A program made the translations under genes and the position numbers. A stretch of 64,000 nucleotides of DNA, taken from Lepidodermella squamata (lineage: Eukaryota; Animalia; Gastrotricha). The first letter of the stretch is position 1, and each line of letters opens with the position of its first letter. A model generated the notes under the pieces. That model was not told the origin of the DNA. It saw only the letters and a list, made by a program, of their open reading frames with translations, and did not search any database. Shown piece after piece: positions 15,319 to 64,000 of the stretch. The DNA lies in contig JBLDXI010000003.1 of assembly GCA_047495785.1 (NCBI GenBank), positions 4,154,001 through 4,218,000 on the forward strand. The letters run 5' to 3'.

Positions 15319-18300
15319 ATGGGAGTAAAGGGGCTATGGAAGTTGCTGGAACCTGCTGCTCAGCCTGTTTCATCCCTCGATGCGTTACGAGGACAAGTGA
15401 TTGCTATCGGTAAAATAGATCCAAGAAAGCAAAAACTGGAAAATTATGTTTTTTATTTGTAGATATAAGTATGTGGGCTCATCGCCTTTTGAAAGGCGGC
15501 ATCGGAAGTCACGAGAAAGCTCTAATGTTGACGTTTTCACGGATTTCCAAGCTGCTGTACTATGGAATTAAACCTGTATTCGTCTTCGATGGCGCCCCTC
15601 CTCGCGTCAAGCTTGAAACTCAGGTTGGTTTAAACGGCCATGACGAAGCCTGCTTAAACTTTTGAGAAATGATAGATGCGTCGCCGCAATCGCCGCGAAG
15701 CCGCGAGCGAACGAGTCGAAAGGCTTCGGCGACGCTTGTTAGACCAGGTGGTTGAAATGCAGGCCGAGGTCGCTGCTGCGGCGACCAGCCAGGACCCCAG
15801 CCAGCCATCGACTGAAAATGAAGTGGTCGATAAAGTTCTACAACGACTTCGCGATGCCCGCGAAGCCGAGCTGTCGAACGACATTTTCAAGCTTCAAACT
15901 GATGTTGATTTATCCGCAGTTTTGGAGGCTCAATCGTAGGTTTTCTCGATTCGACTTCAATATTTACGAATTAATTTGACAGTTCATCGAGCGAAAGCAG
16001 CAGCGATGAGGAAAGTGAAAATTCGAACAGCCAGTGGACACAACGCTTTGACGATGAAGATGACGAAGCTCTACTCAATTCAGTTTACTTCAAGGAACTT
16101 CCTCCAGAGGTTCGTCCACTATTTGGGTCTCAAAAAATGGAAAAATTATTGTTTTAGGTTCGGCATGACATGTTACTCGAGCTGAAAGTAAAACGAAAAT
16201 ACGCTGCGAGCATTGCCAGCGCACAAGGGGCAGAAACGTCATTTTTACCCAAGGTTCCCTAACAAATAGAAAGTTTGATTAGATTTAATTATTTCGAATA
16301 TAGGATCCGTCGGATTTCTCAGCCTTTCAACTCAAAAAAGCGTTGACGGGCAGCAAAATAGCGGAAAAACTGCGCGAAGCCCGGAAAGAAATCGCAGCTA
16401 ATGCCGTTGAGAGGGCGGGAGCTGATGCTTCCCTGCTACGCCGAGTCATGTTTTCCGGGGCAGGTGACAGGTCTACAGCGGCTACTGAGGTTGTTTGATA
16501 TATTTAGTTTTAACTCGAAATTCATTGAATTGACAGATTCGAGTGGAGACGGGCGGCGCTTCATCGTCCTCCGAATACGTTTTCGTGCACAACAAGCGGC
16601 AAGTGGACGATTTTGGGTTCGCTAGTGTCGCCTATCGGCCTCCGCCGAAGAAACAGGCCAAAGTTGAACCGTTGACATCACAACCGCCGGCTAAGGCGAC
16701 GGCTTTATTCATGAAAATCGGAACTTTTGACAGTTCAGCCTACGCCATTGGCGCAGCTAAAATTCAAAGCTCTGACAACGAAATGGACTCAGATTCCGAT
16801 GAAATTGATGATTATTTCAAACCAAAACCCACGCCTGTAGTGGCGAAAGCTGATCCTGTCGTTGAAAAAGCTCCAGTTCAACCAGTTCCGGAAATTATAA
16901 GCTCGGATGAAAGTGAAGACGATTTCGAGGAAGTGCCCCCTGTTCCATCAATAACTGATCTCGCGACCCCGGTGGAAAAAATAATCAAACCTATCGCGCA
17001 AAATCCACCGAAAAATGTGATAATCGAACCGCCTAAGCAGGCTGTTAGGGTGATCGAAAAAGAAACTTTACCTGTGATACCTGAAACCGAAGCAGAACCT
17101 GAAATCTGTGAAAAATCTCCCGAGTTGGCGATTTCTCAATCGCCACCTGCACAAGTGACTGAGCCTTTGAATATTTCAAAAAATTCTGAAGCCGATGTCT
17201 CGAGTTGGCAATTGGAAGATGCTTTGGTTGCTATTCGTGAGGAGCGAAAAGAAAGCGCCCAGACGGCGTTGATGGACTTTGACCGCGAAAAGCGATCCGC
17301 AGCCGCCCCGGCCGAGTCGTTCTACTCGGATGTCGCCGAGATGTGTCGCGCTTTCGGCTTCCCGACTGTCGACTCGCCGGCGGAAGCCGAGGCCCAGGCG
17401 GCAGCGATGGACAGTGCGGGTATTATCAATTGTTGTTTGACTGATGATTCAGATTATTGGCTGTTCGGTGGGCAACGGTGTGTTCGAGGCCTGTTCGCCA
17501 GTGGGCCGGGTAAAAAGGACGATGCGTTGTCGGCTGGAGCCGCTTGCTACAAATACGAGTTATCGGAAATAGTGAAAAATACGGGTCTTGATCGGGACAC
17601 GATGATTTTCATCGCCATGATTTCTGGCAGGTAATTTTTTCAAACATCTTCAAAAAAGTACCGAGACTAGTGATAACTTTGGACCATTTTTGAAGTATAG
17701 AAATCAAATGGAATTATTCCATTTTTACCTGATATTTTGCAATTGCAAGCGTAAATATGGAAGGGTTCCAAATCGCTCCCGTGAGCGCAACCTCAAGAGC
17801 GTAGACGCGTCGCTTTATTTGCGTATTTTTTGCTCGGTTAGGTCGGAAAATTGCCATAAAACGAGGAAATTTCAACTCAAAAAGTAAATATCAACAGCCG
17901 CCTGAAATGCTGGGGTGATGGAGTCCAGTGCCATCTATTATTTATTTAAGAGCATATGAATCCCAAAGTTGAGAGCACGTTAACAAAAAGTTTCGAGTGG
18001 TATAAAAGTGGCAGAAAATTCGAGTCATATTTCAGCCCGTTTCAAAATTTGATAATAACATAACAAAAGATGTACAAAATTCAGCATTTGTATGATTTGA
18101 GCTTAGGTTTAGTCAACAGATAATTGTAAATAAGTGAGCATTGTAACAGATTTTGAAGCCGCAATCGCATCGTGGAGGAAGGCTAGTATAGGAAGTAATA
18201 TCGACTGGGCGATGATGAGGACAATGAAAGTGGAGTGGTAGATTGTTAAACAACAGAGGCCCTGCGTAACTAAGAGAGGCTTGGCCGTAGTCAAGTTTCA

Positions 18301-31290: not shown

Positions 31291-33836
31291 ATGTCGGCGA
31301 CAGTGAAAAAGGCGTCTGGACGCCCGTACACTACGACATTGGGCATACTGTTGGGTTCAGCTCAAACATCAACGCTCGGGCCATGGCTGGCCGGCTCGTC
31401 GCAATCACGCCAATCCTCATCGTCTTCAACTGTGATTACCAAGCTTGTCGGTAAACTGTCGAGTTTGCCCGTCGTAGCCGCAGCTTCCTCTACTGATGCT
31501 TCGTTAGCTCTGCTACGGCTCGACACTGGCTTCACGTCGAACGGCAGCGTGCAACAGGTGTCGGCGAATCGAACAACTTCGCTAACTACTATCGACGAAG
31601 CAGCTCCGCCGATGACTTTTGTTCAATTTCTTCAATCGACATCGCCGCCGTTGATACCTGTTGTCGGCATGAGCCTCATATTTATCATGATATTTGTAGT
31701 CACCCTGTCTTTACTGCCGCATTTTCGCAAGGCCCAGGAGAGGACCAAATACTACATGCGGACAACCGGCGAGATGGCCGAGTCAACGTCGTCGGACAGC
31801 GTCGTTCTACGTTCAGCCACATTCGAGTATTTTTATAACCAGGTATGTTGGACTAATCATGCTGAGCTAAACAAATTGCTAACATTTTTCATTTGTTATT
31901 TTAAGATGGGAATGCGAGTCGGTTGTGTTAGCGACTTCAAGCGAACTTCTTCCACTAGTAGCACTACGCAGCCTTTCCAAGACTTGGTAAATTTTTTATC
32001 CACTGTTTGAAAACATTTCAGGACGAAAATATGCAATGAATTTGGGGAAAAATCATCTGTCAGCCTTCTACGAGCCATATGACAAACCGCTTTTTGAAGT
32101 TTCCTTTTCCCAGCTGATTTCAGCTTTATGCCCAGCAAAAATGTGAGGGATCTCCCAACCTCAAATTTCCAACGTGCAAGAAATGAAGTTCAAATTGAAC
32201 TCTAATTTCCGAAACTTGCTTGACCTAGTTTTTCTATTACCCAAATGAAATTGAGCGGTAGCGTCCCATGGGCAATAATATCCGGTTTCAATCGCGTCAA
32301 ATGTATAGCGTGTCTCATAAGTAACACAAGCAAACAAAATACACGGAAAAATAATTAGAAATTCTCAAATGAGAGGAAAAGTGGCCAGAATTATTTTTAG
32401 AAAAATTCAAAACATCACGAGAATATTTATCAACTGTGTCTCTTGCTGATGGGATTGAAAAAGTCTGGAGAAATTTGGTCCAACCGGTAAAATACCGAAA
32501 ATTACCGAACCTACCATCGGGATTTTTCGTGTTTTCTCTTCGGTAAATTTTTTATTTCATCGGTTAAATCGCAGGTAAAAGATGGAATATTCTCTCGATA
32601 GGTTTAATTATTTAATAAAATTGAACAAATTTCCTGCAAAGAGTTGCGAAATTAAAAAATAGTTAAAAAATAGTTATGGAAACGGTTAGTAAGTGCTCAA
32701 ACAGTGTTTAAGGGGCTACCTACTAAACATTCATTTCTGGGCTTATGATAGATTTAAATTAAATAGATGCTTAGGGGAATTGGAATTTGGAATTATACTT
32801 GAAATTGCTGGTAATTCAAATTTAGAGATGAATGCTGAGATTTTGGGACTATTTACATACAACTTGAAGCTTTCTTTTGGGATTTTAGCAAATAATTTTT
32901 CCAAAAGACCCAAGCGAGTGAAAGGGGAAATCTTAAACTTATTCTCGCAGGTTTTAAAGTTTTTTCGGGAATTTTATGTTCCAACTTGTTACTTTGCTTC
33001 AGTTTTTGAAAAAATACGATACCATTCAAGGAAAAGTAGAAATGTTGGCAACTTATGGATACACTAATGTATGTAGAACCCGGCGTTGAGGTTCACGCTC
33101 CGAAGTTCCCAAGTCAATATGGAAAACTAATTGTCTGTTTTTTTCGCATTAGCACCTGCTGATGCCACCAGTTCCGACTTCAGATTACAATGGCGATGGC
33201 AGTTCGAGCAGGGGCAGTTTCGACAACGGCACCAGCAATAACCGATATTCCACAACACTGGCGTCTTCATTTTTAACAGCAACAAGCCCAGGGTCGCCCG
33301 ACCTGCACTCTCAGTCTCACTTCCTGCTAGCCACCCGGCCAGCTCGGTCTGAACTGATCAGCTTCGACGCTTCGCCTGGCGAGCAAGACGAAAGCGACGA
33401 GACTAACTTCGACACCCTGTCGCCTAGCTCGCACCTGGCCAGGGCGGAGTCAACCTCGTCGATCTCGCTGACTTCAGCGGTGAATCTACCTCTTCCGCCG
33501 AACAACTCCAGCCAGACAAACCTTCAGAGGCAACAGCAACAACAACAACAGCAGCAGCAACAACAGCAGCAACAACAGCAACAGCAACAACAACAACAAC
33601 AAAGACAGCACCAGCAAGCGCATCGATCTTCGCTGCACCCGCATAGCGTGATCAACGCGACGCCGATGGGTGTCATGGGCAGTTCGCGGGGCGCCGCAGG
33701 TCGGGGCGCGGGCGGGCGGCGGAGCAGCATGGCGCCGCCTCGGCAGCAGCAACAGCGCAACAAAAACGGGCGTTCCGGTGAGAGTTCCGACAACAGCGCC
33801 AGCTTCAAACGCATGGGCATTTTCGGACGCCACTGA
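31291..33836 (+). CDS. Single-pass membrane protein of unknown family with Ser-rich regions and a polyQ tract; exons about 31291-31842, 31906-31986, 33153-33836
   Basis: TM segment LIPVVGMSLIFIMIFVVTLSLL followed by basic residues; phase-0 GT-AG introns link the ORFs. Confidence 0.65.
33531..33602 (+). repeat. Mixed CAA/CAG tract encoding 24 Gln
   Basis: 72 nt of CAR codons, in frame. Confidence 0.95.
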
Positions 33837-38000: not shown

Positions 38001-39823
38001 ATGATTGGCGAAATTTTCGAAAAAATAGAGGAGCTTGCTGGTCGATTGAACTGCTGCAAGTTGGAGGTTACAGGTAAACATGTTTAACTTGAACATTCTG
38101 AACTGCATGTATTGCTGCCGTAGGAGGCTATTTTATCCTTATTTCTGGCATTTCCAACGACGTAGCTGACGACTTCATCGAGGATCATGTCAAGGAAATG
38201 GTTAGGAAATGCTTTGTCTCGCTCTGCCTGTTATTAAACATGTCTTCCGTGCCTCTCAAATCAACAATTGTTCAATATGCCGACGATACGACCATATATT
38301 ATTCTTCCAAAAATCCTGCCGAAGTCCAGAAAGTTCTACAACGCGACATTGACCGAGTCACTGACTGGCTGAGTTCAAATAGCCTTAAAGTTAATCCGAA
38401 AAAGTCACAATTAATGATCTTATCACTTAGCCACTCCGATTTCAAAATCAATATCACGATCGAAGGTAACGAGATCGAAGTAACCAAATCACTACGCCTC
38501 TTAGGATTCTCATTCGACAGCAAACTCCTCCACAACGAACAAATCGACGCTGCGTGTCGCAAAGCACGAAAGGGCCTCTTCGCCCTGCAACTCGCTGCGA
38601 AAAACGGGCTGAATCGCTTGTGCCTCACGGCGATGGCTAATGGCCTTGTCTTCTCTCACCTCCACTACTGCGACATATTGCTCGGCGAGGCCTGCAAAAC
38701 TTCACTCGAACGAATGCAGAAGCTACAAGACCGAGCTGTCAGAATCATCATGAATGCGTCCATCGACGCTCCCGTGGCGCCATTACGCAAAGAGCTCGGA
38801 TGGTTGGACTTGGACGGCAAACACGACGTACACCTGGCAACTTTAATGTTCAGGAGCATAATAGGTGAAGCCCCGGATGCTATCTGCAACTTGTTTACCA
38901 GGAAACAACCCGCTCGACAACTGCGCAACGCTCACCTCACCTTCGAGCTTCCTAAAGCTCGAATCGACTACGGCAAAGCTCGTCTCAGCTACCGAGGACC
39001 GGCTTTGTTCAACTCTCTGCCCATCTACTTTCACTGCACACAGCACAAACCTATTGGCATTCTCGAATACGACGGCACTTTGCCTGATTGTAAATGCGGC
39101 ATGAAAGCCTGCTCAACCGCCAACGATTGCCGTCAACTTGTATATAAACATCTTTTAAATTGTTGATTATTTTGTCTATTTGTTGATTTAATGTCCTATT
39201 TTGTTTTGACTGATGACCTGGCCTGAACTGACTTCGATTCTCTGCACGAAACATTTTAGAAATGCACCTTTTCCACGTCGAGCTCTCAACTATGGGATTA
39301 TGCTCAATAAATAAATAAAAAATAAAATAATTATAGCAATAATTCTGAAGGTTCACGTCGCGTTGGAGTTGACTGAAATTAGCTGTTTAAAAATTGATAA
39401 AGCTGATAGCGATGGTTTTGTGAAAGAGCCGCATTTCCGAATCGGAGTTCATGTGGGAAGCGCCAATGTTGCCGTGGTCAACCTGAAAATTCCCCGCCTC
39501 TTGGTTACGGGAGAAGCAATAACATCAGCAAACCTAGTTCATGCTTGCGGTCTGCGTAAGTGTTTCTTTCCAAATATTTCCAAATTATGCAACGAATGTA
39601 ACGTCGACTTTATATCTTAGCTCGTAAGGTGCTTGTTTCCGGCGCTGTTGAGAATCGTCTGTCCAGCACGACTGGGCTGGAATTCATAGCGCGTGATTTC
39701 GTGGAATCTTTAAAACTGTTTTGGGTTCAGGAGAGCGAAACGAATTTCGAAGATTCCAGCAGCGTTGCATCGAGCTTTAATTTCCGCCGCCGAGGATCAG
39801 AGGATTCCGTGTCATGTTATTAG
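35023..39823 (+). CDS. Membrane guanylyl-cyclase-like protein (TM, NIT-like ectodomain, TM, coiled coil, degenerate cyclase); exon 1 interrupted by a transposon
   Basis: YVPKNVISEVKTG..AIFDICN..KLEVTGGYFILISG..HVKEM|VHVALEL..FRIGVHVGSANVAVVNLKIPRLLVTGE; the many short introns give a continuous frame from 36127 to 39823. Confidence 0.78.
35132..36119. mobile_element. Non-autonomous foldback DNA transposon, P-superfamily-like
   Basis: 214-bp TIRs (35132-35345 / 35906-36119, one mismatch seen) starting CATAG; inner 97-bp inverted repeats (35434-35530 / 35718-35814); 8-bp TSD GCCTCAGC at 35124-35131 and 36120-36127. Confidence 0.9.
38240..39330 (+). mobile_element. 5'-truncated L2/CR1-group LINE (RT C-terminal half) in cyclase intron 38201-39350
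   Basis: QYADDTT, WLSSNSLKVNPKKSQ, LRLLG, HLHYC, LQDRAVRII, LGWL, SYRGPALFNSLP; (TAAA)n tail at 39306-39330. Confidence 0.92.
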
Positions 39824-40527
39824 GCGTTTAAAATATTATTTCAGGCTAGGTCTATTATTCTCTGTGTTTTATTGTCAATTGTCATTTGTCATCATTAAAT
39901 TTTTGGCCGAGATGTTGAATATAAATCTTATTCCCAAGCACGCTAAATAAACTCGGGACCAAGACTTATTAGCAATAGCCCCAAGTAACCACACCGTGTG
40001 TTTGTTTTCAGTTTATTGCAATTGAAATGAATTAGTACCTACACTTTAAAATAAATATTTAAAATCTTGTTTTTTGTCCATTTTTTAATCTTTCTGCACA
40101 TGTTTCCGTAGATACATAGCAGGGCGCTTTTCCTAATAAAATCATAACTCATGGTGCCATACTTCACTTATAGCCGTATGCCAAGCCTGATAGAAAGGCA
40201 AATTTTCACTTCCCAAGGTAGCAATTACATCAATCGCGAATATTAATGCTGTAAATTTTATACCATCGGAATCCCCATTCTTCAGGCTTTCTCTTGATGT
40301 TTATGGTCATAAAATATTCGGATTTGTTCAAGAGCGGCCAACGGTTAAAGAGAGCAAGGTGAGAGCAATTCTCGATTTGAGAGGGAAACGTGCGCGCTTA
40401 CGCCGAGGTCCGTTTTTCGAGTGTGCGCGCGACACATTTAAACCTAAGCCCTTCCTCGCTCTCAGCATCTCAGTTGTCTGCTTTTTTTACTAATCCATTT
40501 ATCTGTTCATCCCGTTTCACACTGAAA

Positions 40528-41172
40528 ATGACCGACGCTGTTGCTGCCACTGCTTCGCCCAAGAAGACCACGAAGACCACGAAACCCAAAGCGCCCGCTG
40601 CTCATCCGAAGTACTCCGAAATGATCGTCACCGCCATCGCAGCGCTGAAAGAACGCGGCGGCTCGTCTCGCCAGGCCATCTCCAAGTACATCCAGGCGCA
40701 TTTCAACGTCGGCAAGGACGAAAAGAAGATCAACGCTCACCTGCGCCTCGCTTTCAAACGTCTCGTCGCGTCGAATGCTCTCGTTCAAGTCAAGGGTTCA
40801 TTCAAGGTCGGCGAGAAGAAGGTAGAAAAGCCCAAGGCGAAGAAAGCGACTGTCCCGAAAACAGCCAAGCCGTCTTCGCCGAAGAAGACTGGTACGAAGA
40901 AGGCCGTTAAAAAAGCCGCCAAGACTACTGTCAGCACTGGCGATGCTGCCGCGCCCGCCGCCCCGAAACCCGAGAAGGTAAGCATTATCGATAGATTTGT
41001 TTATCGAGACGTTAATTTTCCGTTTTTCTCCGTTCAGGCAAAGAAAGCCGCGAAACCGAAGGCTGCTAAGAAAGTCGCGTCCCCGAAGAAACCGACGTCG
41101 CCGAAAAAGGTAGCTGCGAAGAAGAAGCCCGCGAAGAATGCCGCTCCGAAGAAGGCTGCCGCGAAGGCGTAA
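40528..41172 (+). CDS. H1: Linker histone H1 (H1.0/H5-like, polyadenylated); intron 40978-41037
   Basis: HPKYSEMIVTAIAALKERGGSSRQAISKYI globular domain, K/A/P-rich tail with SPKK motifs, AATAAA at ~41212, no histone stem-loop seen. Confidence 0.95.
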   Translation: MTDAVAATASPKKTTKTTKPKAPAAHPKYSEMIVTAIAALKERGGSSRQAISKYIQAHFNVGKDEKKINAHLRLAFKRLVASNALVQVKGSFKVGEKKVEKPKAKKATVPKTAKPSSPKKTGTKKAVKKAAKTTVSTGDAAAPAAPKPEKVSIIDRFVYRDVNFPFFSVQAKKAAKPKAAKKVASPKKPTSPKKVAAKKKPAKNAAPKKAAAKA

Positions 41173-43752: not shown

Positions 43753-46700
43753 ATGCAAGCAGCTGTGTGTTTCCTATTCCTGCTAGTCGCAGGAATCTCC
43801 GCAAGTGAGTTGAACAAAACGTTAACGTTTGGCATTTTTATAATCAATTGTTTCAGAGCCCATCGTGAGGCCCGCCTCACCCTCGGGATCTTGCGGCAAG
43901 GCGCCATCGTGCGATTTGCGTAAGTTTCAGAAAAAACAAGCAGATTTTTGTTAATTTTCGATGTCCAACTTTTGTTACAGCCAGCAAGATCAAGTTTGCC
44001 TATGAGCAGGGCAAGACCTACACCTACGACGTCCAGTCGTCGGTGAAGACTTCGGCCTCGTCGGACTCCAAGTCGGCTGGTTTGCAGATCTCGGCCCAGG
44101 CCAAGATCGGCGCCATCCACGACTGCGAATTGGAACTTGAGCTCTCAAGTGTTGAGCTCAAGGACGAACAGGGCAACAAGATCAACGACAAGAAGTTCCT
44201 CGACGACTTGTCGCTGCCTCTTCGCTTCGAATGGACCGACGGTCGCATCGGCGAAGTCTGCCCCACCGACGACAAGGACTCACAGTGGTCGCTCAACTTC
44301 AAGCGCAGCGTCTTGTCTGCTTTCCAAAACACCATGGATTCGTAAGTTTCAAATTTCTTCAAATTTTTTCTCATTTCTAGATTTTTATTGAATTTTCAAG
44401 ATTTTTTCTCAAATTATTATTGAGAGCCTAATTGTTTGTTATTTGATGAAGGCTCGACAACGCTGAACCTGCGCGCGAACTCGACGCTGCCGGTGATTGC
44501 TGGGCCAACTACGAAGTTGAGTCGGCTGACTCGAACCGCAAGGTCGTCAAGTGGACCAAGGATCTGAACCAATGTGCCGATCGCCAGGGCGGCGCTGTCG
44601 CCACCTACGGCATGAAGTACTCGAACCCGATGTCGGACATCAACACGATGCCGCTGACCGAGGGCAAGCAGACCTGCAAGCAGACCGTCGAGAAGCGCAT
44701 CGTCCAGTCGGTTGAGTGCACGGAACGCCTCGAGTTCTTGCCGTCTCGCCTCCAGGAGGGCGCCACCGTCGTCGCCACCGAGGCCACCATGCGCGTCAAG
44801 CTTGTCGGCGAGAACGCCGAACAGGCCCAGGCGCCCGCTGCCCGCTACGCCACCGACCTCAAGTTCGACCACTCCTACATCGCCGCCGACCTCGACGGTG
44901 ATTCTCAGGATGCCGAAAAGCTGCTCGACAAAATGTGCCAAGCCGATGGTGAGGTTGTCGCCGAATCCGGCCGCGACTTCTCCGACCTGCTCGACAGCCT
45001 GCGCTCGCTGAGCAAGGAGGAAATCGCCAAGGTCTTCGAAGCCGCTTCCAAGTGCAAGGCCACCGCGTAAGTTTCGATTTCTATTTATCCAAATTTCGAT
45101 TATAAAAGCGTTGTGTTTACAGTAAGATGATGGAAAACATCATCCCCGACGTTGCCACCCGTGCCGCCGCTAGCTTCATCGTCGAAAAGGTCGAAGCCAA
45201 GCAGCCGAGCTCGTCGATCGCCCGCGAGGACTGGCTCGCCGCCCTGCGCGGTGTCCAGAACCCGACCGCCGACGTCGTCGCCAAGGCCGCCGCCATCGCC
45301 ACCTCCGACGACGAGTACACCATCAGCGGTCGCGCCTACCTCGGCGCCGGCTCGCTGCTGAACAACTTCTGCCAGCGCAACAAGGACTGCCACGCCGTCC
45401 CTGAAGTCAAGCAGGCCGTTCAGAAGTTCGCCGACCAGCTCGCCGTCTGCCGCTCCGGCTCCGCCGACCGTGAAGCCACCCGCCGCGCCCTGTACGCCCT
45501 GCGCGCCCTCGGCAACGCCGGTGCCGCCGTCGCCGCCGACGCCCTCCCCGAGGCCGTCATCGACTGCATGACCAACAAGGCTCTGTCGCCCGAGCTCCGT
45601 CTGTCCGCTCTCTCCGTCACCCGCCGTGTCCCCTGCGGCCACGAAGGCGAGAAGGTCCAGGAGACCCAGCGCAAGATCATCCAGGACGCCGCTGACGACA
45701 CCGAGTTCCGCTCGTACGCCGCCATCCACGCCCTGCGCTGCCCGTGCCTGCGTGACGTCGACGCCATCCGCACCGTCATCACCGACGAGTCGCGCCCCGT
45801 CTCCGACAAGTTCGGCGCCTTCGTCGTCTCGCTCATCTCGCGCATGGAAGCCTCGCCGCTGTCCAGCTACTGGTCGCCCGAGCTCCGCTCGACCATCGGC
45901 GCCCTGATGGCCACCCGCCACGCCGCTGCCCTCTTCATGAAGGTCGACGCCCTCAAGACCGGTGGCTCGATGCACCGCCAGCAGTTCTTCGCCGGCAACG
46001 CCGGTTACATGTACGACATTGATCTGATCCACTCGGACAAGTCCATGTTCCCCCGCATCGCCCGCCTCAACGTCTCCGTTGGTCTGTTCGGCCGCGCCAT
46101 CAACCCGATCGAAATCGGCCTGCGCCAGGAAGGCCTCGAATCCATCATCGACTCGATGCCCGCCATGGACGTCTTCGAGAAGAACACCGAAGGTCTGATC
46201 AACGTCCCGCGCCTCAACACCGACAAGCTGAAGCCCGTCCTCGACAAGCTCAAGCTGAGCCTGTTCGTCCGCGTCTTCGGCTCTGAAGTCCGCTACGCCG
46301 CCGTCGACAAGGAAGTCATGGACCGCCTGCGCCAGCGTCTGCACGAGCGCGTCAACATCGACTCGCTGCGTAGCGAAGATGGCCGCCAAGCTGCCGAGCT
46401 CTTCGTCGACCGCGCCCTCAGCCTGCCGACCGTCGCCGGTCTGCCGATCCGCCTCGCCATCCGCGGCTCGTACCGCAGCCACGTTCGCCCGACCATGAAC
46501 CCGGAATCCAAGCGCGACGAAACCGGCCGCGTCTCCTCGGTCAACATCAAGGCCGACGTTAAGGCTGGTCTCTCTGTCGAACTGCGCTCGTCGATGGCCG
46601 CCTACATCGGCTCCCGCCAGTACGGTATCCAGGCCGTCACCCGCCTCGTCTCCAAGGCTGAGTACAAGCCCGAGTTCATTTTCGAAGGCCGCCACCTTAA

Positions 46701-49700
46701 GATCAAGGTCGACATGCCGTCGAAGACCATCCGCGCCGCCAGCCTTTCGTAAGTCGACTCGTATCACGTTTCCACCGCTGATTTTAATAAATCTTTATTC
46801 ATCTATAGGAACGAAGTTCACATCCGCCGTGACAAGACCGAAGAGCCGATCACCGTCGACCAGGCTCTCCGCACCGCCAAGATTTGCACGCCCGGCGTCA
46901 CTGGTCTCCAGATCTGCCTGCAGTCTGAAGTCCCGTCCCGCTGGAACGGCATCATGACCCCCGGCAAGCTGTCCATGTCTTTCGAGAAGACCGACGAGAA
47001 CATGCGTGGTGTTGAAGTCGAGTTCAAGGCCGATCACTCCGTCGATGCTGACGGCAAGATCAACACCGTTGACTTCAAGGCCTACGTCGACACCCCCGGC
47101 AGCGCCAAGGACCGCAAGCTCCTGGCTCAGCTGACCGTCTCGCGCCCCGATCGTGAGATCAAGGCTATCCTTGAGACCCCGTGGAAGAAGGCCAACCTGA
47201 ACGTCAAGATGACCGGTGATGCTGAGGACAGCCAGGTCTCGGCCACCCTTGCCATGGGCGAGGAACAAGCCGGCCTCCGCAACTACCAGGTCGCTGTCAA
47301 GCGCTCGTCCAGCTCCGTCCGCGACGGTGACAACAGCTACCCGAAACGTTCCATCTCCGTTGAAGTCACCCGCAGCGATGTCTCGCAGGCCATCCTTAAG
47401 GCCAGCGGTGCCATCACCGACATGGGTGCCCTCAAGGAAGTCAGCGTCAAGATCGACGAACTGCACATCCCGAACTACTTCACCCTGTCGAGCCCGGCCA
47501 CCCTGAACGGCGAGTTCGGCAACCACGCCACCCGCGGCCTCGGCTTCCTCGTCAAGGGCAAGACCGAAATCCGCGACTTCGAAACCGAATTCGGCATCAA
47601 GGTCCAGTCTGAAGGCAAGCAGCTCGTCTACTCGCACCGCCTGCACCACCAGTCGTCCGCCAGCGGCGTCGGTGATGACAAGCACGACCGCACCCTGCTG
47701 TGGGAAGTTGAATTCAAGCGCGAACCGGCCCGCATCCTCCTGCTGAAGAGCGTCCTCCGCTCTCTGGACGTGCCCGTCGTCGACCGCGCCGCTCACCGCC
47801 TCGTGCTGCTGCTCGAGCGCCCGACCGAGAACGACATGGTCACCGACTTCGAAGTCGACTTCGGCGTCGAAGCTAATGCCAAGCGCTTCAAGCTGTCGCA
47901 GAAGATCAGCCGCCACGAAATGCCGACGATGCGCGGATTCAACTACGCCGTCACCGTCTCCGGCCTCAACATGATCGACCGCACCATCGCCATCAACTAC
48001 CACCGCGAGTGGTCGCCCAAGCTGCTCGTCGAGTTCGACGCCGAGGTCCGCCGCGGCGACATCGCCATCTACCGCGTTGAAGTCAACACCCGCCGCGACG
48101 CCCCCGGCTACGGCGAGTTCAAGCTGCGCACCATCTGCCCGTACAGCGACTTTGTCCTGCACGGCAAGGGCGAAAAGACCGACGACGTCACCTCGGTGCA
48201 CTCGCTGCGCCTTGAACGCAACGGCGATCTGCGCATCAACTTCGAAAGCAAGGCCCGCATCGAAGAGGGCAAGCGCGACGTCGAAGCTAAGCTCGAACTT
48301 ATGGGTATGGCCCCGATCACTCTGTCCTCCCGCGGCTCCGGCTCGCCCTTCGACGGCAAGTGGCAACACGACGGCGTCCTCGCCTACGGTGGCCGCAAGC
48401 TGCTGTTCGGCGGCAACGTCCTCTACTCGCCCAAGGGTGACGACGAAGGTGTCCTCGACGCCAACGTCTACATGGGTACTCTCGAGCGCATGTTCAAGCA
48501 GTACATCAACTGGCACCGCACCGGCAAGCGCGTTCAACTGCGCGGTATGACCGAAATGGCCGATGATATGTACAAGGTCACTGGTGAGCTCGACCTCGAA
48601 GCCCGCCGCCACCGCATCGTCATCGAAGGTCCTCGTGGCTCGGCTGAGATCGCCGGCGGTCGCCTGTCCAACCAGCGCGGCTTCGACGTCGTCGCCAAGT
48701 ACTCGTGCCCCACTGTTGAACTCGAACTGTTTGCCAAGGCTGGTCTTGACAAGCTCCGCTCTGACATCACCGGTCACTTCGCGTACAAGCTGCCCGAAGA
48801 TCAGGTCAAGAAGGTCATTGGCTTCAAGGCCGGCTACAAGGCCGACCTCACCAACGGCATCGACATCGGCTTCGTCAGCGGCGTCAAGGTCAACGACAAG
48901 GACTGGTTCGCCACCGCCAACGTCACCGTCATCCCGACCCACAAGGTCGCCCTCGGTTTCGGCGCTGGTGACGGCGAGAACTTCCGCCACCGCTACGCCA
49001 TCAGCGTTGCCAAGAAGTGGGAGACCGAGAGCCTGCTCCGCCTCGACGGTGAGCTCGAAGCCCACTGCACCTCGCTGCAGTTCCCCCGCCTCAAGATCGA
49101 GACCTACAAGAAGCTGTCGTGGAACAAGGCCACCGAACGCCTCGGCGCCTACGAGACCAAGGTCAACTACGTTTTCGGCGAAAAGCAGGCCTGGTACGCT
49201 ATCCAGATCGATGCTATGAACCTGCGCGAAGCTCTCACCCTCGGCGTCGAAGGTGACTCGAACTTCATGCAACGCGTCGACATGAAGCTGGCCTACACCG
49301 CTAGCATGCCCACCATCACCCTCGCCATCAACGGCCGCGTCGGCCAGCGCGCCGCCCGCGTCCGTGGTCTCATCGACCTGACCAAGACCCGCACTGAGGA
49401 AGACAAGTCTGTCGATGTTTCGTACAGCCTTGCTGCCTACCTCGACGAGAGCGAACAGGCCGAGATTTCGATCCGCGGCCAGGCTATCGGCGATGAAAAG
49501 AACACCAACAGCTTCACGACCGTCGAGGTGCGCGACCTCATCTACGCGATGAACACTCGCCACGTCAACACCGACAAGAAGCTCGCCGAAATCGTTGTGC
49601 GCACCCCGCACGAAAACTTCCGCGAAAACGTTGTCCGCGTCTCCGCCCTCAAGGACTCCGATGACACCAACGCCGAGCTGCTGATCAAGATCGGCTCGAA

Positions 49701-52700
49701 GACCTTCCGCTCGACCATGTGGCGCAAGGTTGAAGAGAAGTCGCGCCGTGGTGAAGTCAAGGTCGACGTCAACGGCCGTGTCTACGCCGCTGGCTACACC
49801 CTTGACCACCCTGAGGTTATGATGAGCCGTGGCGAATACCGCCTCCGTCTCCGCGTCGACACCCCAGTTGAAGGCTACAAGACCTCGACCGTCATGTTCT
49901 GGATCAAGCCGTGCAAGGACGGTATGCAAGGTATCGCCGCCGTTCTCGGCCTCACCGACGCCCATCCCGACATCAAGGAACAGCGCACCCAGATGCAGTT
50001 CGCCTACCAGATCGGCGAAGAGAAGAAGGGCGGTATCATGTTCTCGGCTCGCGGTGAACGCAACTACGAACAGGACAAGCTGATGCGCGAAGCTTCGCTC
50101 ATCTTCAACATGCCTCGCCTCAACTTCACCATCGACATTGAATCTACCCGCGTCCCCGAAAAGGGCAACGGCTGGATCGAATACCGTAGCAAGCGGTAAG
50201 ACTCTCGCAATTATTAATGTATCAGATGTTTATACAACTATTTTTCTTACAGCAACGGTGAATGGCGCGTTGAATGGGCTGGTTCGGGCAACACCCGTAA
50301 GGCCGGCAACGCCCACATTGAGATCCGCGGCAAGACTGTTGAACGCGAAGAGCCCATCATCATCCGTCTGTCTGGCAACCATGACCTGACCGCTGAGACC
50401 AAGGAAATCGGTGGCCAGATCGCGACCAACCTGCCCGGCTACGACCGCATCCGCCTCCGCTACACCCAGGGCCTCGATGAAGATGGCAACATCGCCAACA
50501 CCGTCGAGCTGATGATGCCCAACAGCCAGATCGTCCGCGCTGAGCTCGCCGTCGGCTTCACCGTCGACCAGGCCGACCTCAAGTTCAAGTTCGAATCGCC
50601 GTTCGAAGCCGTCCGCGAAATGAAGGCCGAGCTCGAGGTTAAGATGGAAGCGCCCAAGTACTCGATCGACCTCAAGTTCAACCGCAACGAGCGCAAGTAC
50701 GTCATCCAGATTTCGGCCGACAAGACCGAAGAATCGCTGAGCGGTGACATCAACATCGAAACCCCGTTCCCGGCTCTGGCCAGCGCCTCCGGCTCGTTCA
50801 AGCGCACCGGCAGCCTGCTGTCCGAGGAGGGCTCGAAGACCACCGCCGAACTGCTCGTCAACAAGGACTGGACCCTGAAGGTCGACTCTGAAGGCAAGCT
50901 ACGCGGCGAAGGCCCCCGCTTCGTCTCGTCTCGCATCACCACCAAGTCTGACACGTACATCTTCGAAGTCAACAAGCAACCCGGCAAGTTCGAAGCTAAG
51001 CTGCCGCTGCCCTACTGCACCATCCACTACACCGGTGAGATCAACACCGCCAACAACATCCACGCCGAACTGAAGAAGCACCACGACTGCTCGCCGTACA
51101 GCGTTCAGGGCGACCTGACCATCTCGCTGAGCGACAACAAGCAGCTGCTGCTGAACCTCGAGACTCCGATCCCATACTTCACCAAGGTCAGCGCCAACAT
51201 CACCTACGACTTTGACGAGGCCATCTACCAGATCGAGCAGCGCATGCCCCCGACCGGTCTGTACATCAACATCAAGCGTGAAGATCACCCGCTCAAGATT
51301 GAGGCGACGATGAATGCTGAAGACAAGTCGGCGACTCTGCTGATGACCGTCCGCGGCATCACCGTCCGTGGCGACGCCCGTGTCGGAAATACCGAGGGTG
51401 GCCACATCGACCTGACCATCGAGACCCCGGTTGTTAACATCGAAATGCGCAACAAGCGTGAAGGCCCGTGGTCCAAGCCGACCAACGTTGAAGCCAGCCT
51501 CACCGCTGCCGGCCTCGACGTCTACTCGCTCTCTGGCAACTGGGACCTTACTACCTACCCGGCCGCCTACACCTTCAACGCTGAGGGCTCTCTGCTGTCC
51601 AAGCCTGCCAAGCTCGAGCTCGAGGGTACCACCCAGCACCCGATGAGCTGGACCCGCCAGTCTAAGGTCAAGTTCGGCCAGCGCACCCACGAAACCAAGA
51701 TCGAGATGCAAGGCCAGAAGCTGACCATCGACTACAAGAACTCCGAGAAGCGCTCCTTCACCGTCTCCATGGCGGCGAACCCGTCCGCCGACAGCGAACG
51801 CAAGACATTCCAGTCTAGCTTCGAACTGCAACAGAGCGGCTACACCGATCGGTTCAGCAGCCTGAAGTGGAACGAAAAGTACACCATCCCGGCCGCTGTT
51901 GACGCGTCGAAGATGCGCGAGAACCCTCGCGAATTCCTGCGCACCCTCTTCTCGCACATCGAGTGGGACCAGAAGCTCGAAGTCGACGGCTCGCACAAGT
52001 ACTCGTCCGTTGGCAGCCTCGAGCTCGCCATGCCCCGTGACGCCACCATGGTCGGCCTTAAGGTCAACTATGAATCGAACCGCGCCTGGAACGACAAGAA
52101 GTACCACGTTATCCTCAAGGTAAATTATCGAACCCCATCATCTTTATAGCTCTATTGTTAAATTTTGCGTCTGACAGGTCAACAAGCCCGATGAAAACCC
52201 GACTCAGGTCGAAATGAAGCTCGACATCAATGGCGAGAAGAAGGTCGACGTCAAGGGTACCATCAAGCGTGTTGAAAAGTTCTCGCGCTACGCTGAGATC
52301 AAGCTCGACTTTGAAGCGCCGAAGCAGATGACCTTCCACGTTTCTCGCGACGCCACCGACCCGACCAACCGTGTCTGGAAGGCCCTGATCAACTTCGACC
52401 GCTCCGTCGATGCTGAGGGTACCCAGTGGCAGCTGAACGTCAAGCCTGAGGATGGTGTCAAGGCTCGCGGTTTCGACCTGAAGCTGACCGCCACCCGCCC
52501 GGACAAGGAATACCTCAACGTTGAAGTCGGCTACAAGCGCAGCCTCGAAAAGGCCTTCGAAATCGCCTACCATCTGTTCGCCAAGACCGCCAACATGGAC
52601 AAGAAGTACGGCTTCAGCCACAAGCTCAGCGTTGAGAACATGGTTGTTGACAGCAAGTTCATGTGGGCTGCTCTCACCCGTGACATCAAGGTCGACGTTC

Positions 52701-54543
52701 AGGCTGGCTACGAACAGGGCAAGCGCATCTTCATCAAGAGCGTCTACGACCTCGGCACCCCGTCGAGCCGTCTCGAGGAGGAAATCGAATGGTCTGATGG
52801 CAAGATCACCGGCTTCGTCCAGCTCGGTGACAAGAAGGTCGTCTTCGACGGTGTCATGAAGCCCACCGATCGTAACAACTACGAACTTGACGTCAAGGTC
52901 AAGGGCGACGTTGATGCTCAGTTCTCGTTCGAGAAGAAGTGGTCCGAGGAAACCAAGAACCGCACCTACCACGCTATGCTGAAGACCAACGCCGGCGAGA
53001 TCGAATGGACCAGCCACCGCTACCTGGCCGATCCGATCCGCAGCCGCGGCATCCTCGTCCGCTGGCGCAAGACTGACTGGAACGCCAACGAGCAGACCCA
53101 GGTCTACCTGTACGGTGAGGTCAACATGGCCGCCCCGTCTGGCCGCGTCCAGATGGTCTCGGACTTCCGCAACTTCGACTACTCGGCCCGCGTTGAGCAC
53201 GGCGAGAACGGTGCCAAGGAGATCATTGCCAGCTTCAACGACGAAGGCAAGAAGTCTCTGATCACCCTCGCCATGGACCCGCTCCACAACTCGGTTGATC
53301 TGCTCTCGATCCGCGCCGACGGCAGCCGCCTCAAGGTCCACAGCCACATCGTCTCGACCAAGTACGGCTACTTCGAAGCTAAGCGCATGGCCAAGCCCGA
53401 TAGCACGTACGAAAACCTCGTCCGTCTGACCGTCAGCCTCGACCCGGCTCAGCTGCACGCCAACCTCAAGTACAACACCCAGTTGGCCGAAATCCTGCGC
53501 GAGTACGTCAACCGCCGCCGCGAACAGGCCCAGGAAATGCTCGGCAAGTACAAGGACAACGTTCCTCAGGGTATGCAGACCGTCCGCGACATCATGCTAA
53601 TGGAACAGCTCGTTAAGCCCTTCGTCAGCGCTATGCGCGACGAGCGCAAGCAGCTGCGCGAAGCCGAGCGTGCCAAGTGGCGCGAAATCGCCAAGGAGTG
53701 GTACGAATCGCCGGTCATGAAGAAGCTCTTCTCCGACCGCGTTCCCGACTTCGACGCCTCCATCGTCGGCCGCTGGTTGTCTGACGCCCAGACCGCCGTC
53801 TCGTCGGCTGTTGAAACCTCCGTCGACCGCGCCATCGTCGCCATCGGCCAGGCTGTTCGCCAGTTCGTCAAGAACGACCTTCTGCCCGATATGCGTGAAC
53901 TTCGCATGAAGGCTGCCGCCAGGCTGTCCAACAACGCCGTCACCGGTGCTCTTGCTGGCGTCCGCGACACCGCCCGCGCCTACGCCCTCGAGGCCATGGA
54001 ACGCCTGCGTGAACGCACCTGGACCTCGTGCCTGCTCGGCTACCTGAAGAAGATGCCCGAAAAGCTGGCTGCCCGCTTCCCCGACAACGAGAACCTCCAG
54101 GTTATCCGTGAGCGCCTTGCCAAGGCTGTTTCGAACGTCCGCGAATACTTCGCCGAGATGCGCGATCGCTACGTCAACGTCGACACCAAGACCAACCCGG
54201 TGCTGTCTGGCATCCGCGAAACCATCGCCAACGCTCAGATCAACTACAGCGAAGGTGAGGTCGACGCTAAGATCCCGCTGCCGGAGAACAAGTACCGCTC
54301 TCTGAAGACCCCGGCCTCGCTCGCCCGCCGTGTCGAAGCCGTCCGTGAGCTGCTTGAACGCGGTAAGATTGGCTTTTGCTCAAATAACATCGCAAATTCT
54401 TATGATTTTTCTTTACAATATCAGGTGTTGCTGCTGTCAAGGCTCGTCTTGCCAACCCCCGCGCCAGCGAACTGACCCTTCGCCGCATCTACGGTATGAT
54501 GCAGTACTTCCGCGCTTCGCAGCTGAAGTACCTGTTCCTGTGA
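43753..54543 (+). CDS. Large lipid transfer protein (apolipophorin/apoB/vitellogenin superfamily), ~3424 aa; exons 43753-43804, 43857-43919, 43981-44341, 44452-45066, 45123-46748, 46809-50195, 50253-52119, 52178-54362, 54425-54543
   Basis: Signal peptide; YEQGKTYTY, WSLNFKRSVLSAFQ, ELDAAGDCWANY, ALRALGNAG, IEIGLRQEGLE; long beta-strand-rich body; coding length 10275 nt, divisible by 3. Confidence 0.9.
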
Positions 54544-58075: not shown

Positions 58076-58855
58076 ATGTTGAAGTCTAAGGTAGTTGTTC
58101 TTGGACCACAGGAGTCTGGGAAATCATTGCTCTCCAACTTCTTATCCGATGCTAAAGATGCCTCGGTTACCAATTACAGGCCAACTCAAGGTGTCAGGAT
58201 TTTAGAATTTCAAATGGCTGGCGGTGGAGGCCCCAAGGGTGATGTTGAAGTTGAACTGTGGGATGTTTCTGGATCACCACGATATGAAGCTTGGTTTGTT
58301 GGGTGTTTAGCTTGCATATATTTTCAATTTCTAAACATATCGTTCTACAGTTGGCCGGCGATAGCACGTAATGTATCCGCGATGCTATTCGTTTTCAATC
58401 CTAACGTAAAAGGACAGGAAAAGGATTTAGAGCGATAGTACGTCAACTTACTTTGAGTCAGATTGTGATTGAACGAATTTATGAATAGTTTCAGAACATT
58501 TGCCGACTGGTCCGGCTTGCCAATAACTTCTTGTTTAGTCTGCTCATTTGCCACGCGCCGAAGTGACCCTCAGTTGTCTGCCATTCGTAAGCTTGCTTTA
58601 ATCAAAATTCACATGAATGTTAATCGAAAGTTTTGGCAGCTCCATCGATGGCTTCGATTCCGTCTGTAAGTTTTCTGATGAAAGGCGTGTTGACATGGGA
58701 AATGAAGCGAAAACTTCTTTATTTATCAGGTATCTGCAAGTCGTGAAGATAATGGCGACAATATTCGAAACGAATTTGTTCGTCTAGTTTCTCGCGCGAT
58801 GGATGCTGCTAATAAAAAGCGCGATCAGCAAGAGCTGAGCGTAATGAACAATTAG
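58076..58855 (+). CDS. IFT22: Intraflagellar transport protein 22 (RABL5)
   Basis: KVVVLGPQESGKS, YRPTQGVRILEF, ELWDVSGSPRYEAC|WPAI, C-terminal RDQQELSVMN. Confidence 0.93.
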
Positions 58856-61086: not shown

Positions 61087-61680
61087 GTCTCGGCTGAATA
61101 CTGGATAAACATTTCTAATCCCATTTATTTGCGGATACGTTTAGGTCGCATTATATTGTCCAGCGGATGACCCGCGGCTTAGAACAAGGTGTTGGGTGAA
61201 CTTGCCGCATGCAAGCTGCTTCGTTCTCCTCGAGCTGACCCAGCGCTTCAGGTTTTGTCACGTTTTCGTTACACGGCTCTCAAAAGACTGGTCTCTCGCG
61301 GGTTTAAGGTTGATAAGCCTCGATGCTATAGGTGAAACTCAGCTATCCGCATTCAGCGCTCGATATAACCCTTTTCGATCAAGTTTTTTCTCAATTTTAT
61401 CACTTCAGCTGCATAACCAAGGACAGTGTAAAAATTTATTTGCAAATGCTTAACTGTAAGCTCAGCTTCTCTTGTAAACACCTTGCTGTAAGAAAATTAA
61501 TTCAACATTTCGAACTTGTAAAAAATAAGAAGTTGGATATTTACTAAGTGGTAATTATTACGGTACGAATTTTATGGTTGAGTGATTTTCCATTAACAAC
61601 AGACAACAACAAAGCTGATTTGCGAATCAGGAATGGCATTTTGTATTTTCGCTCAGCATATATTGGCAATAAGACGCTTT

Positions 61681-62028
61681 TTACTTTCCGAATCCAAGCC
61701 AACGAGCTATAATAGAAACAGTTGAGAGATGCAAAACGCAGTGAAGCGGAAAGTTTACCTGTTCGCTTGTCCTTGTTCAAGTTGCGCAGCTGAGGAATGA
61801 ATAGTGCTGCTCTATCGTTACCATCTAATTCATCAATAAGATTTAGACTATCAATGTCGAAATCGTCGCCAGCTTGAGATTCCGCCAATTCTATTTGAAT
61901 AAGCAATGAAAAGCTATGACCCTTAGTCAATGTTATTACTTACCAGCATCGTCAACTTGTTCCGCATTGGCGAACATGACGGCCATAGCCATAAAGAGGC
62001 AAAAAAGAGCGAAGATTAAGCGAGACAT
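61681..62028 (-). CDS. Prohormone A, predicted TARWLGF-amide; exons 62028-61944, 61890-61759, 61706-61681
   Basis: MSRLIFALFCLFMAMAVMFANA signal, acidic spacer, AALFIPQLRNLNKD-KR-TARWLGF-GK-stop; two phase-1 GT-AG introns. Confidence 0.85.
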
Positions 62029-62753
62029 ATTTGAAATTGAAGACAATTCTATGTGGTTAAAAGCTTGTGAAATGGCTAATGACTTGGTTCACGAGATATT
62101 CCGCTATTTATGACGGAAATTTGACGCGATAATAGAGCGGAGCATGTTCAGGAGGTGGATCGAGGCGCCCGCGGCTGCATCCTTCCTAACACAGCTTCCA
62201 CAGCTGCACGGAGAGGGCGCACGAACACGTATCGGAAGCTAGGTGCTTAAGGGTAGCCGAGGGGGTGTGTGGCTTCAATTTTTACCTTCAAAAATCGTAT
62301 TCTTGACAATCGAAAATTCTTGAATGGCTGTTATAAATCCGTATGGCGGCTTTAATTGATTCATTTTGACCGTAGTCAACTTCCTGCAATTAACGGAACG
62401 TGTAAACATTCCAGGTGAGCACGTGAGAGTGTTTGTTGGCAAGTGTAAGCTGCGATGAATCATATTTAGGTATTGGACGCATAAATTGTCCTTTAGAACT
62501 TGATTTATAGCGCTTTTTGAATGAATAAAATACTCCTCTCTTGTCCTCCGAAGCGCTGTTCGACAAGTCTCCTATTTCTGTCCAATAAACTCAGGCGATT
62601 GGGAGAATAAAACATCATAGAAAGATAGAATTTCCATTCGAAAACATTTAATCGCTTCGTGATAATAACATTATATGCAAAAACGAAATGCGAAATTAGC
62701 CTTATAATTGTGAAACTGCGTTGACAAATGAAAATTCATGCTAACACCAGCCG

Positions 62754-63172
62754 TTACTTCCCGAATTGGACCCAACGCGGTGCTGAAAAAATTGTCCGAA
62801 ATAAAATATTGTTATTTCATGTTGACAAAAATACTTACGTTTTGCGTTGCCGAACCCTGCGTCTCGCTTTCTGTCCTCCTTATGATTTTTGTTGTACCTG
62901 CGCAATTGAGGAAACAGGACCTTCATGAAGCGACCTCGTTTTTCCTCGTTCTCCATGTCATCGTCGCCGAGACTCAGGTCATCTAGCTCGAAGTCATCAT
63001 CGCCACGACGTACATAATCGATTTCTGCAATTCGAGATCAAACAAATTGATGATTTATCATTGATGATTGGAAGGTTTTACCTGCAGGTTCCAATAATTC
63101 CGCGCCAACGAAAACAGCTATAAGTGCAACAACGAACACCAAAATTAACAATGTCTTGGAGGACGGTGCCAT
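62754..63172 (-). CDS. Prohormone B, predicted DAGFGNAKPPRWVQF-amide; exons 63172-63082, 63024-62839, 62782-62754
   Basis: MAPSSKTLLILVFVVALIAVFVGA signal, acidic spacer, KR-GRFMKVLFPQL-RR-YNKNHKED-RKR-DAGFGNAKPPRWVQF-GK-stop; same intron layout as gene A. Confidence 0.87.
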
Positions 63173-63775
63173 ATTTCCGAGTGAAAGAAATTTGAAAAAT
63201 TCCGATATAACAAAATGTTCAAGGAATGAGCTCAATAATCGCGAATACTGGAAGATTTCCGAGAATCAAGGCATTAATATGCGACGATGGACATATGTCA
63301 CCCTCAGTCAGTCCATCGCGTGGCTTCGATTGAGGCACACGCAAAATTGGGTCACAGCCTCTCATCTTGCCGATGAGTTCGAAATTCGCGTGCCTGAAAA
63401 TTTATAACGCCCTTTATCCTCCCACCACACTATGACTGATCAACGAGTACAGATGAATCACTTTGTTTTTCCCAACTGAGCAACGTGGCTGAATGCTGAA
63501 TGCTGTTTTTAACATCTCAGAGAAAACAATTTATTTGGATAAAACATTCAAACAATATAAAAAGTTGGAAGTTTCACTGCGCACTAAACGAGCAGAACGT
63601 TTCACTTGACATGGCTAAGACCAATTTCAAAAATTAACCAACCAGGTACTACAGTAACTGCGAACGCAACTTATGATAAACGATAAGTATATTAGGGAAG
63701 CATGCGTCATCTTCCGAAACCTAGCCATCGAGCTGACATTTTAAAGAAACACAATCATATGAATAAATTATCTAG

Positions 63776-64000
63776 TCATTGGGTGAATGCCCTCGAAAGG
63801 CGGTTACCATTTCGGTTAATGCTTCCTCCGATCGAAAATTTGTGGTCATCGACGTTGAGGGTGGCGAAGTTGTTGTTGGAAGCTCGGCCACTGAACGTCG
63901 AAATGCGCCTACCTCCAGCACTCGGACTTCGAAAATAGGCTGACGGATGGCGATACAGTTGTTTGGCTTCTTCACTTGACCTTGGATCGTTAGCTTTGAC
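63776..64000 (-). CDS. Probable last exon of a gene starting beyond the window
   Basis: GC-richer stretch open from the window edge (VKANDPRSS..RLSRAFTQ*), followed by AT-rich sequence with AATAAA-like signals; frame ambiguous. Confidence 0.35.
   Translation of the reverse strand, partial: VKANDPRSSEEAKQLYRHPSAYFRSPSAGGRRISTFSGRASNNNFATLNVDDHKFSIGGSINRNGNRLSRAFTQ

Follow-up and report, generated by a model that had tools for sequence, protein, structure and literature searches.

We analysed a 64,000-nucleotide stretch of the genome of the gastrotrich Lepidodermella squamata (assembly GCA_047495785.1, contig JBLDXI010000003.1, positions 4,154,001 to 4,218,000 of the forward strand; the whole stretch is called the window below, and positions are counted from its first letter). 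Near its end lies a tandem cluster of small genes for prohormone-like proteins, in which a short RWxxF motif, followed by glycine and a basic residue, is encoded on a separate terminal micro-exon. Two of these genes are complete: gene A, on the minus strand at 63172-62754, with a coding sequence of 306 nt for a protein of 101 residues, and gene B, on the same strand at 62028-61681, with a coding sequence of 243 nt for 80 residues. A sequence-only reading of the window had proposed two same-strand, three-exon paralogs with two phase-1 introns each. Exon-by-exon translation of the minus strand between 61400 and 63500 reproduced these models exactly, and the observation of tandem prohormone-like genes is confirmed. 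All four introns of genes A and B are short (52-57 nt), lie in phase 1 and run from GT to AG.

Contigs of three public sequencing runs (X1, X2 and X3) were aligned to the window at 61500-63300, and we give their joints together with the exons of each gene. In gene A, the coding part of exon 1 (63082..63172) starts with the ATG at 63172-63170, encodes 30 residues and ends on G 63082, the first base of a split codon; the 5′ untranslated region (UTR) reaches at least as far as 63205, as shown by an X1 contig that spans 63082-63205 with a joint to 63024. Intron 1 (63025..63081; 57 nt, phase 1, GTAAAA...TTGCAG) is marked by an exact joint 63024/63082 in that run. Exon 2 (62839..63024), covered by contigs of X1, X2 and X3, encodes in order an RR site, an acidic spacer (GDDDFELDDLSLGDDD...), a KR site, the segment GRFMKVLFPQL, a second RR, a linker, an RKR site and DAGFGNAK, the start of the terminal peptide. 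Intron 2 (62783..62838; 56 nt, phase 1, GTAAGT...TTTTCAG) has its exact joint, 62782/62839, in contigs of both X1 and X3, and it is followed by the coding part of exon 3 (62754..62782), which reads (P)PRWVQFGK-stop. Transcribed 3′ UTR sequence extends to at least 62655, which gives gene A a transcribed extent of at least 63205 to 62655.

Gene B is organised alike. Its exon 1 (61944..62028, with the ATG at 62028-62026) encodes a signal-peptide-like MSRLIFALFCLFMAMAVMFANA and then EQVDDA, and an X1 contig covering 61944-61998 is joined to 61890. The first intron (61891..61943; 53 nt, phase 1, GTAAGT...AAATAG) shows an exact joint 61890/61944 in X1. Exon 2 (61759..61890) carries the acidic spacer GDDFDIDSLNL..., then AALFIPQLRNLNKD, a KR site and the T of the terminal peptide. 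The second intron (61707..61758; 52 nt, phase 1, GTAAAC...TTATAG) is removed at an exact joint 61706/61759 in contigs of X1 and X3, and the coding part of exon 3 (61681..61706) reads (A)RWLGFGK-stop. With a 3′ UTR transcribed to at least 61577, the transcribed extent of gene B is at least 61998 to 61577.

The X1 contigs skip exactly the four predicted introns (61707-61758, 61891-61943, 62783-62838 and 63025-63081), and one of them ends in a SMART cDNA adaptor, which identifies it as cDNA. Contigs of X3, a run from a different study than X1, skip both second introns exactly (61707-61758 and 62783-62838). The X3 contig of gene B stops at 61891 with a 17-letter unaligned tail that equals the end of exon 1, as it would in a spliced transcript, and the X3 contig of gene A stops at 63026. 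X2 spans the whole aligned stretch without joints and with its introns retained, and is therefore genomic DNA. The junctions 61759/61706 and 62839/62782, on which the sequence-only reading depended, are therefore present as exact joints in X1 and X3 contigs alike, and the first-intron junctions are exact in X1. Its further proposal that the amide motif arises only after splicing was borne out as well: removal of the second intron places a micro-exon for R-W-[L/V]-x-F-G-K-stop downstream of a KR site. Thus, genes A and B are shown to be transcribed, with both short phase-1 introns removed exactly as predicted. As the X1 and X3 evidence consists of assembled contigs, it establishes that the spliced forms exist, while expression level and exact transcript ends lie outside its reach; the contigs of the runs derive from whole-animal material.

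The genes had been described as a tandem pair. Two complete genes are indeed present, but the cluster is at least a trio, with a third terminal exon at 63732-63707. This terminal coding exon of gene C (63707..63732, minus strand) emerged from a motif scan and from alignment with the terminal exons of genes A and B: an AG acceptor at 63734-63733 is followed by (A)RWLGFGR-stop, in the minus-strand letters CT CGA TGG CTA GGT TTC GGA AGA TGA. Compared with the terminal exon of gene B, it carries three differences within the six RWLGFG codons, all of them synonymous, a K>R exchange and a change of the stop codon from TAA to TGA, as would be expected if purifying selection acted on both the peptide and its signal for amidation. 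Upstream exons of gene C were not recognisable within the window. The rest of the gene probably lies beyond position 64000, and gene C seems to have either a much longer last intron or a propeptide unlike those of genes A and B. We considered the open frame at 63807-64000 (..NVDDHKFSIGGSINRN) as its exon 2 and rejected it, for it contains no dibasic site and no PQLR and bears no likeness to genes A and B. The transcript alignment reached 63300, and gene C is described from the genomic sequence of the window.

In a six-frame scan of the window, the pattern RW..FG[KR]-stop occurred three times, in each case on the minus strand and directly after an AG acceptor, with all three copies lying within ~2 kb of each other. 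When the window was simulated 200 times with a first-order Markov model, this pattern occurred on average 0.0 times per window and the looser W..FG[KR]-stop 0.035 times. Aligning exon 2 of genes A and B, we found 14 invariant residues at 43 aligned positions, which fall into three blocks: GDDF..D.L.L, PQLR (after LF or LFI) and NK.

Relative to the window, the transcript contigs and one genomic haplotype carry variants at 10 coding positions of gene A, 7 synonymous and 3 nonsynonymous (D53G, M54V and N77S; codons are numbered on exons joined in silico), of which 5 synonymous and all 3 nonsynonymous ones lie in exon 2. The nonsynonymous variants are confined to the acidic spacer or the basic linker (3/3) and spare the signal peptide core, LFPQLR and the terminal peptide, while the variants observed in gene B were without exception intronic. 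Over intron 1 and exon 1 of gene A (62998-63155), X2 provides two differing contigs with 6 differences and a 2-nt indel between them, and the X2 contig at 61512-62507, which includes gene B, differs in intronic positions, carries small indels and has 8 nt inserted behind 62449, in the spacer that separates gene A from gene B. These differences speak for appreciable heterozygosity or strain divergence that is concentrated outside coding sequence.

Translations of both complete genes display the layout that the sequence-only reading had assigned to them, namely a signal peptide, an acidic spacer, a KR site and a terminal glycine with a basic residue. Each N-terminus opens with a short n-region of basic character, continues with a hydrophobic core of 16 residues and has small residues at −3/−1 (V-G-A in gene A, A-N-A in gene B), with 12-residue Kyte-Doolittle hydrophobicity means of 3.63 for gene A and 2.85 for gene B; by residue pattern and hydrophobicity, each gene thus has the N-terminal signal peptide that characterises amidated prepropeptides. 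After splicing, gene A ends in RKR-DAGFGNAK(P)PRWVQF-GK-stop and gene B in KR-T(A)RWLGF-GK-stop, so that in both a dibasic site directly precedes the peptide and glycine, a basic residue and the stop codon follow it, while gene C closes with GR-stop. Expression and restoration of the frame by splicing, also expected of this class, were observed in cDNA-derived contigs of two runs. Gene A contains the dibasic sites RR, KR, RR and RKR, and gene B only a single one. These are real genes, expressed and under constraint, with the architecture that is canonical for precursors of amidated peptides.

Prohormones mature through the successive action of signal peptidase, convertases that cut at dibasic sites, trimming by carboxypeptidase E-type enzymes and amidation by peptidylglycine alpha-amidating monooxygenase. 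In the scheme that we propose, signal peptidase would take off the N-terminal 22-24 residues, and prohormone convertases would cut after KR and, in gene A, also after RR and RKR. A carboxypeptidase E-type enzyme would then trim the terminal Lys or Arg, upon which peptidylglycine alpha-amidating monooxygenase would turn the exposed glycine into a C-terminal amide. Gene B would in this way yield a 46-residue acidic propeptide and TARWLGF-NH2, whereas gene A would give rise to several fragments, among them the non-amidated GRFMKVLFPQL and the amidated DAGFGNAKPPRWVQF-NH2, within which the Lys-Pro bond is not expected to serve as a convertase site. The product of gene C would probably be xARWLGF-NH2. 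Calculated [M+H]+ values are 849.473 for TARWLGF-NH2, 1688.866 for DAGFGNAKPPRWVQF-NH2 and 1335.761 for GRFMKVLFPQL. The amidated peptides would most likely be neuropeptides or peptide hormones that act via G-protein-coupled receptors.

A second claim of the sequence-only reading, that the genes encode a system of two peptides, held only in part. The LF(I)PQLR block is truly conserved, but dibasic sites flank it on both sides (KR...RR) only in gene A. Gene B lacks a dibasic site ahead of the block, which ends in a lone Arg before Asn; upstream of this Arg, positions −4, −6 and −8 carry no basic residue. Because flanking dibasic sites on both sides are found in gene A alone, a PQL(R) peptide is not predicted to be released from both precursors. 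For the same reason, we read the conserved acidic GDDF..D.L.L and LF(I)PQLR segments as more likely being propeptide elements, with a role in processing or sorting, than a second ligand common to all paralogs.

That the genes could not be assigned to a known family agrees with what we found at the level of exon 2 in Pfam, protein-set, metagenome and literature searches. Pfam returned no family for exon 2 of gene A or gene B at E<=1, the amidated micro-exon being too short to scan, and a word-indexed search of a set of 5.8 billion proteins returned nothing for exon 2 of gene A or for the exon-2 region of gene B, for which the query was taken from the mechanical open reading frame (ORF) at 61547-61930. 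HMMER was also run exhaustively over 1.84 billion representatives, with a profile of the two exon-2 sequences, and retrieved no credible relative. Its sole match (P0001, E 3.4e-4), a 516-residue repeat protein that aligned to the basic linker only (..YYEDHKEDRH.. versus ..YNKNHKEDRKR..), was rejected as a chance hit. A feature-based search of the ESM Atlas gave scores that were all <0.9 and were spread across unrelated families, and we did not use it as evidence. When back-translated exon-2 patterns were sought in JGI metagenomes, none of the 599 pattern matches was confirmed. A metagenome scan with the degenerate pattern AG|CT-R-W-L-G-F-G-[K/R]-stop found two loci, neither of them credible and both rejected as chance: in L001 the match sits in a long ORF of another frame, and L002 has GC-rich, bacterial-looking surroundings. 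Full-text searches of the literature did not find RWLGF, WLGFamide or WVQFamide as a neuropeptide, and the part of the PMC6425005 supplement covered here, which includes the transcriptomes of two gastrotrichs (Diuronotus and Mesodasys), contains no WLGFG and no WVQFG. The searched collections evidently do not hold the genes of this animal, as even its own transcripts were not found in them.

Elsewhere in the window, the most conspicuous feature is a very large plus-strand gene at 45127-54475 with long open exons (ORFs of 541, 1081, 545 and 753 residues). Since its first part matches the Vitellogenin_N and vitellinogen open beta-sheet domains, we identify it as a vitellogenin or large lipid transfer protein. 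Its GC content is 0.59-0.61, as compared to 0.38-0.46 elsewhere in the window, with long mirror ORFs on the opposite strand, which suggests that the gene is highly expressed and has a strong codon bias. With one gene left aside, the GC content of the window is about 0.42-0.44, in agreement with the published value of 43% for the Lepidodermella squamata genome. A 322-residue ORF at 38198-39166 (plus strand) aligns with RVT_1, a reverse transcriptase domain, over nothing but the C-terminal end of the profile (positions 146-204 of 205) and is probably a 5′-truncated retrotransposon copy. The plus strand further carries a gene with a linker histone H1/H5 domain at 40390-41172, which has a lysine/alanine/proline-rich tail and a frame that apparently runs through a short intron, and, at 33162-33836, an ORF for a Ser/Pro-rich protein with ~26 uninterrupted glutamines (a CAG/CAA repeat that reads as poly-Leu on the opposite strand). 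Pfam matches also mark an XPG-I nuclease domain protein at 16543-17634, a PDZ-domain protein at 13762-14530 and a small Ras/Roc-like GTPase exon at 58076-58438, all on the plus strand, as well as a C2H2 zinc-finger protein at 3621-4616 on the minus strand.

Returning to the RWxxF cluster, its best current reading, and a likely one, is that of ordinary genes for amidated prepropeptides that stand in tandem and belong to an apparently undescribed family. Judged by sequence, this RWxxF-amide family is an orphan, and it is probably restricted to gastrotrichs or their near relatives. Several points weigh against this reading. The protein-family negatives cover exon 2 only; the signal peptide of both genes was judged by eye and by hydrophobicity only; and the evidence for conservation comes from paralogs and alleles of one genome, no ortholog having been found in another species. 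Furthermore, the mature peptide of gene B has only 7 residues, and motifs of such short length resemble several families by chance. The amidated peptides themselves are predicted from genes and transcripts. A bolder proposal, which we regard as unlikely, is that the RWxxF-amide trio forms part of an expanded, gastrotrich-specific superfamily (core R-[W/Y]-[L/V]) with a receptor lineage not yet paired with a ligand, or that it represents a tyrosine-less counterpart of CCK or allatotropin in Rouphozoa (gastrotrichs and flatworms). If either were true, the picture of how neuropeptides evolved in Spiralia would gain a further ligand family.

Within Spiralia, gastrotrichs stand at a position that has been poorly sampled. 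To our knowledge, orphan, lineage-specific neuropeptides are common in every phylum that has been studied, and for this reason the RWxxF-amide cluster is a useful catalogue entry rather than a surprise. In the literature that we searched, gastrotrich neuropeptides are represented only by a few homology-based entries from Diuronotus and Mesodasys in the PMC6425005 supplement, the text of that paper naming the FMRFamide and RYamide types; descriptions of neuropeptides from this phylum were almost absent, and the Lepidodermella squamata genome paper does not mention neuropeptides. A transcript-verified and selectively maintained precursor cluster would provide concrete ligands for receptor deorphanisation and for the mapping of peptidergic cells in a very small nervous system, and it illustrates how bioactive cores that are placed on 26-29-nt terminal micro-exons escape ORF-based annotation. 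Its interest, which we regard as moderate, lies mainly with the evolution of spiralian neuropeptides and with receptor deorphanisation.

The reading as amidated prepropeptides has to be weighed against accounts in which the encoded proteins do not signal at all. The products might be small secreted proteins or peptides with a function other than signalling, in antimicrobial defence, in gland or adhesive secretion or as a pheromone, with the terminal Gly-Lys being incidental or serving stability only. In favour of this, the contigs derive from whole-animal material, and none of the data point to neuronal expression. We nonetheless hold it to be improbable, since the signal peptide, the acidic spacer, the dibasic site immediately ahead of a short peptide and the G-[KR]-stop form a combination that is conserved in three paralogs. 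The short peptide is, moreover, the most conserved part, which is a hallmark of amidated bioactive peptides, and the mature peptides (7 and 15 residues) are too short and too weakly charged for typical antimicrobial peptides. Even further from the data is the idea that the reading frames arose by chance, in DNA that is transcribed but non-coding or in a decaying duplicate. It draws on the short length of the proteins and on the lack of detectable homologues outside the locus, yet precise splicing restores the frame in genes A and B, substitutions between the peptide cores of genes B and C are exclusively synonymous, allelic nonsynonymous changes avoid the conserved motifs and the motif count of 3 compares with 0.0 expected. 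We consider a chance origin very improbable indeed.

The remaining rival keeps the signalling role and changes the ancestry: the genes would be highly derived members of a known bilaterian neuropeptide family, for example CCK/sulfakinin or allatotropin, that act on the receptor of that family. We regard this as a live but less likely alternative. The CCK family also counts the arthropod YGHMRF-amide peptides and the oyster Cragi-CCK1 among its members. Bilaterian CCK/sulfakinin peptides have in common a (D/E)Y(G) feature and a terminal F-amide, with chordate members ending in GWMDF-amide and the C. elegans homologue in QF-amide (PMC6219549). In the gastrotrich cluster, a C-terminal Phe-amide likewise is predicted at or near the end of a small precursor, Trp stands at −4 as in chordate CCK, and gene A closes with R-x-[L/V]-Q-F-amide (RWVQF-amide), as does C. 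elegans NLP-12 (DYRPLQFamide). The analogy to CCK drawn in the sequence-only reading stands as far as this F-amide, but the defining (D/E)Y(G) is absent beside the amidated end: the mature peptides of genes A and B contain no tyrosine, and the sole D-Y lies in the N-terminal propeptide of gene A, four dibasic sites away from the amidated peptide. Each gastrotrich precursor furthermore holds one such peptide, whereas the CCK/sulfakinin precursors of protostomes hold two each (PMC6219549), and no sequence similarity was found beyond the last 2-4 residues. No search tied exon 2 to any family.

Allatotropin offers a comparison that is divided between the two genes. The peptide of Manduca, GFKNVEMMTARGF-NH2, has a GF.N that recurs as GFGN in gene A and a TAR..GF-amide that recurs in the TARWLGF-amide of gene B. 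The peptide of gene A thus holds a 13-residue stretch with a GF.N start and an F-amide end, while that of gene B starts with TAR and ends in GF-amide. Each paralog, however, fits only one end of the motif, and WL or WVQ is inserted here. An allatotropin is recognised by 13-14 residues, a GF(K/R) start, an (A/H)(R/G)GF/Y-amide end and a position in mid-precursor; gene A ends in RWVQF-amide instead, the peptide of gene B has 7 residues and no GF start, and in both genes the peptide forms the very C-terminal end of the precursor, which has no extension behind it. As with CCK, the resemblance extends over 2-4 residues. The allatotropin receptor is of the orexin type, and with an ancestry of this kind the gastrotrich peptides would act on such a receptor. 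The sister phylum of gastrotrichs is generally held to be the flatworms. In the part of the PMC6425005 supplement covered here, the spp-15-type precursor of the planarian Schmidtea contains FDPIQF-amide and shares with gene A an [I/V]-Q-F-amide end, but it strings together ten tandem hexapeptide copies that have no Arg-Trp, whereas the gastrotrich precursors place a single copy on a micro-exon of its own.

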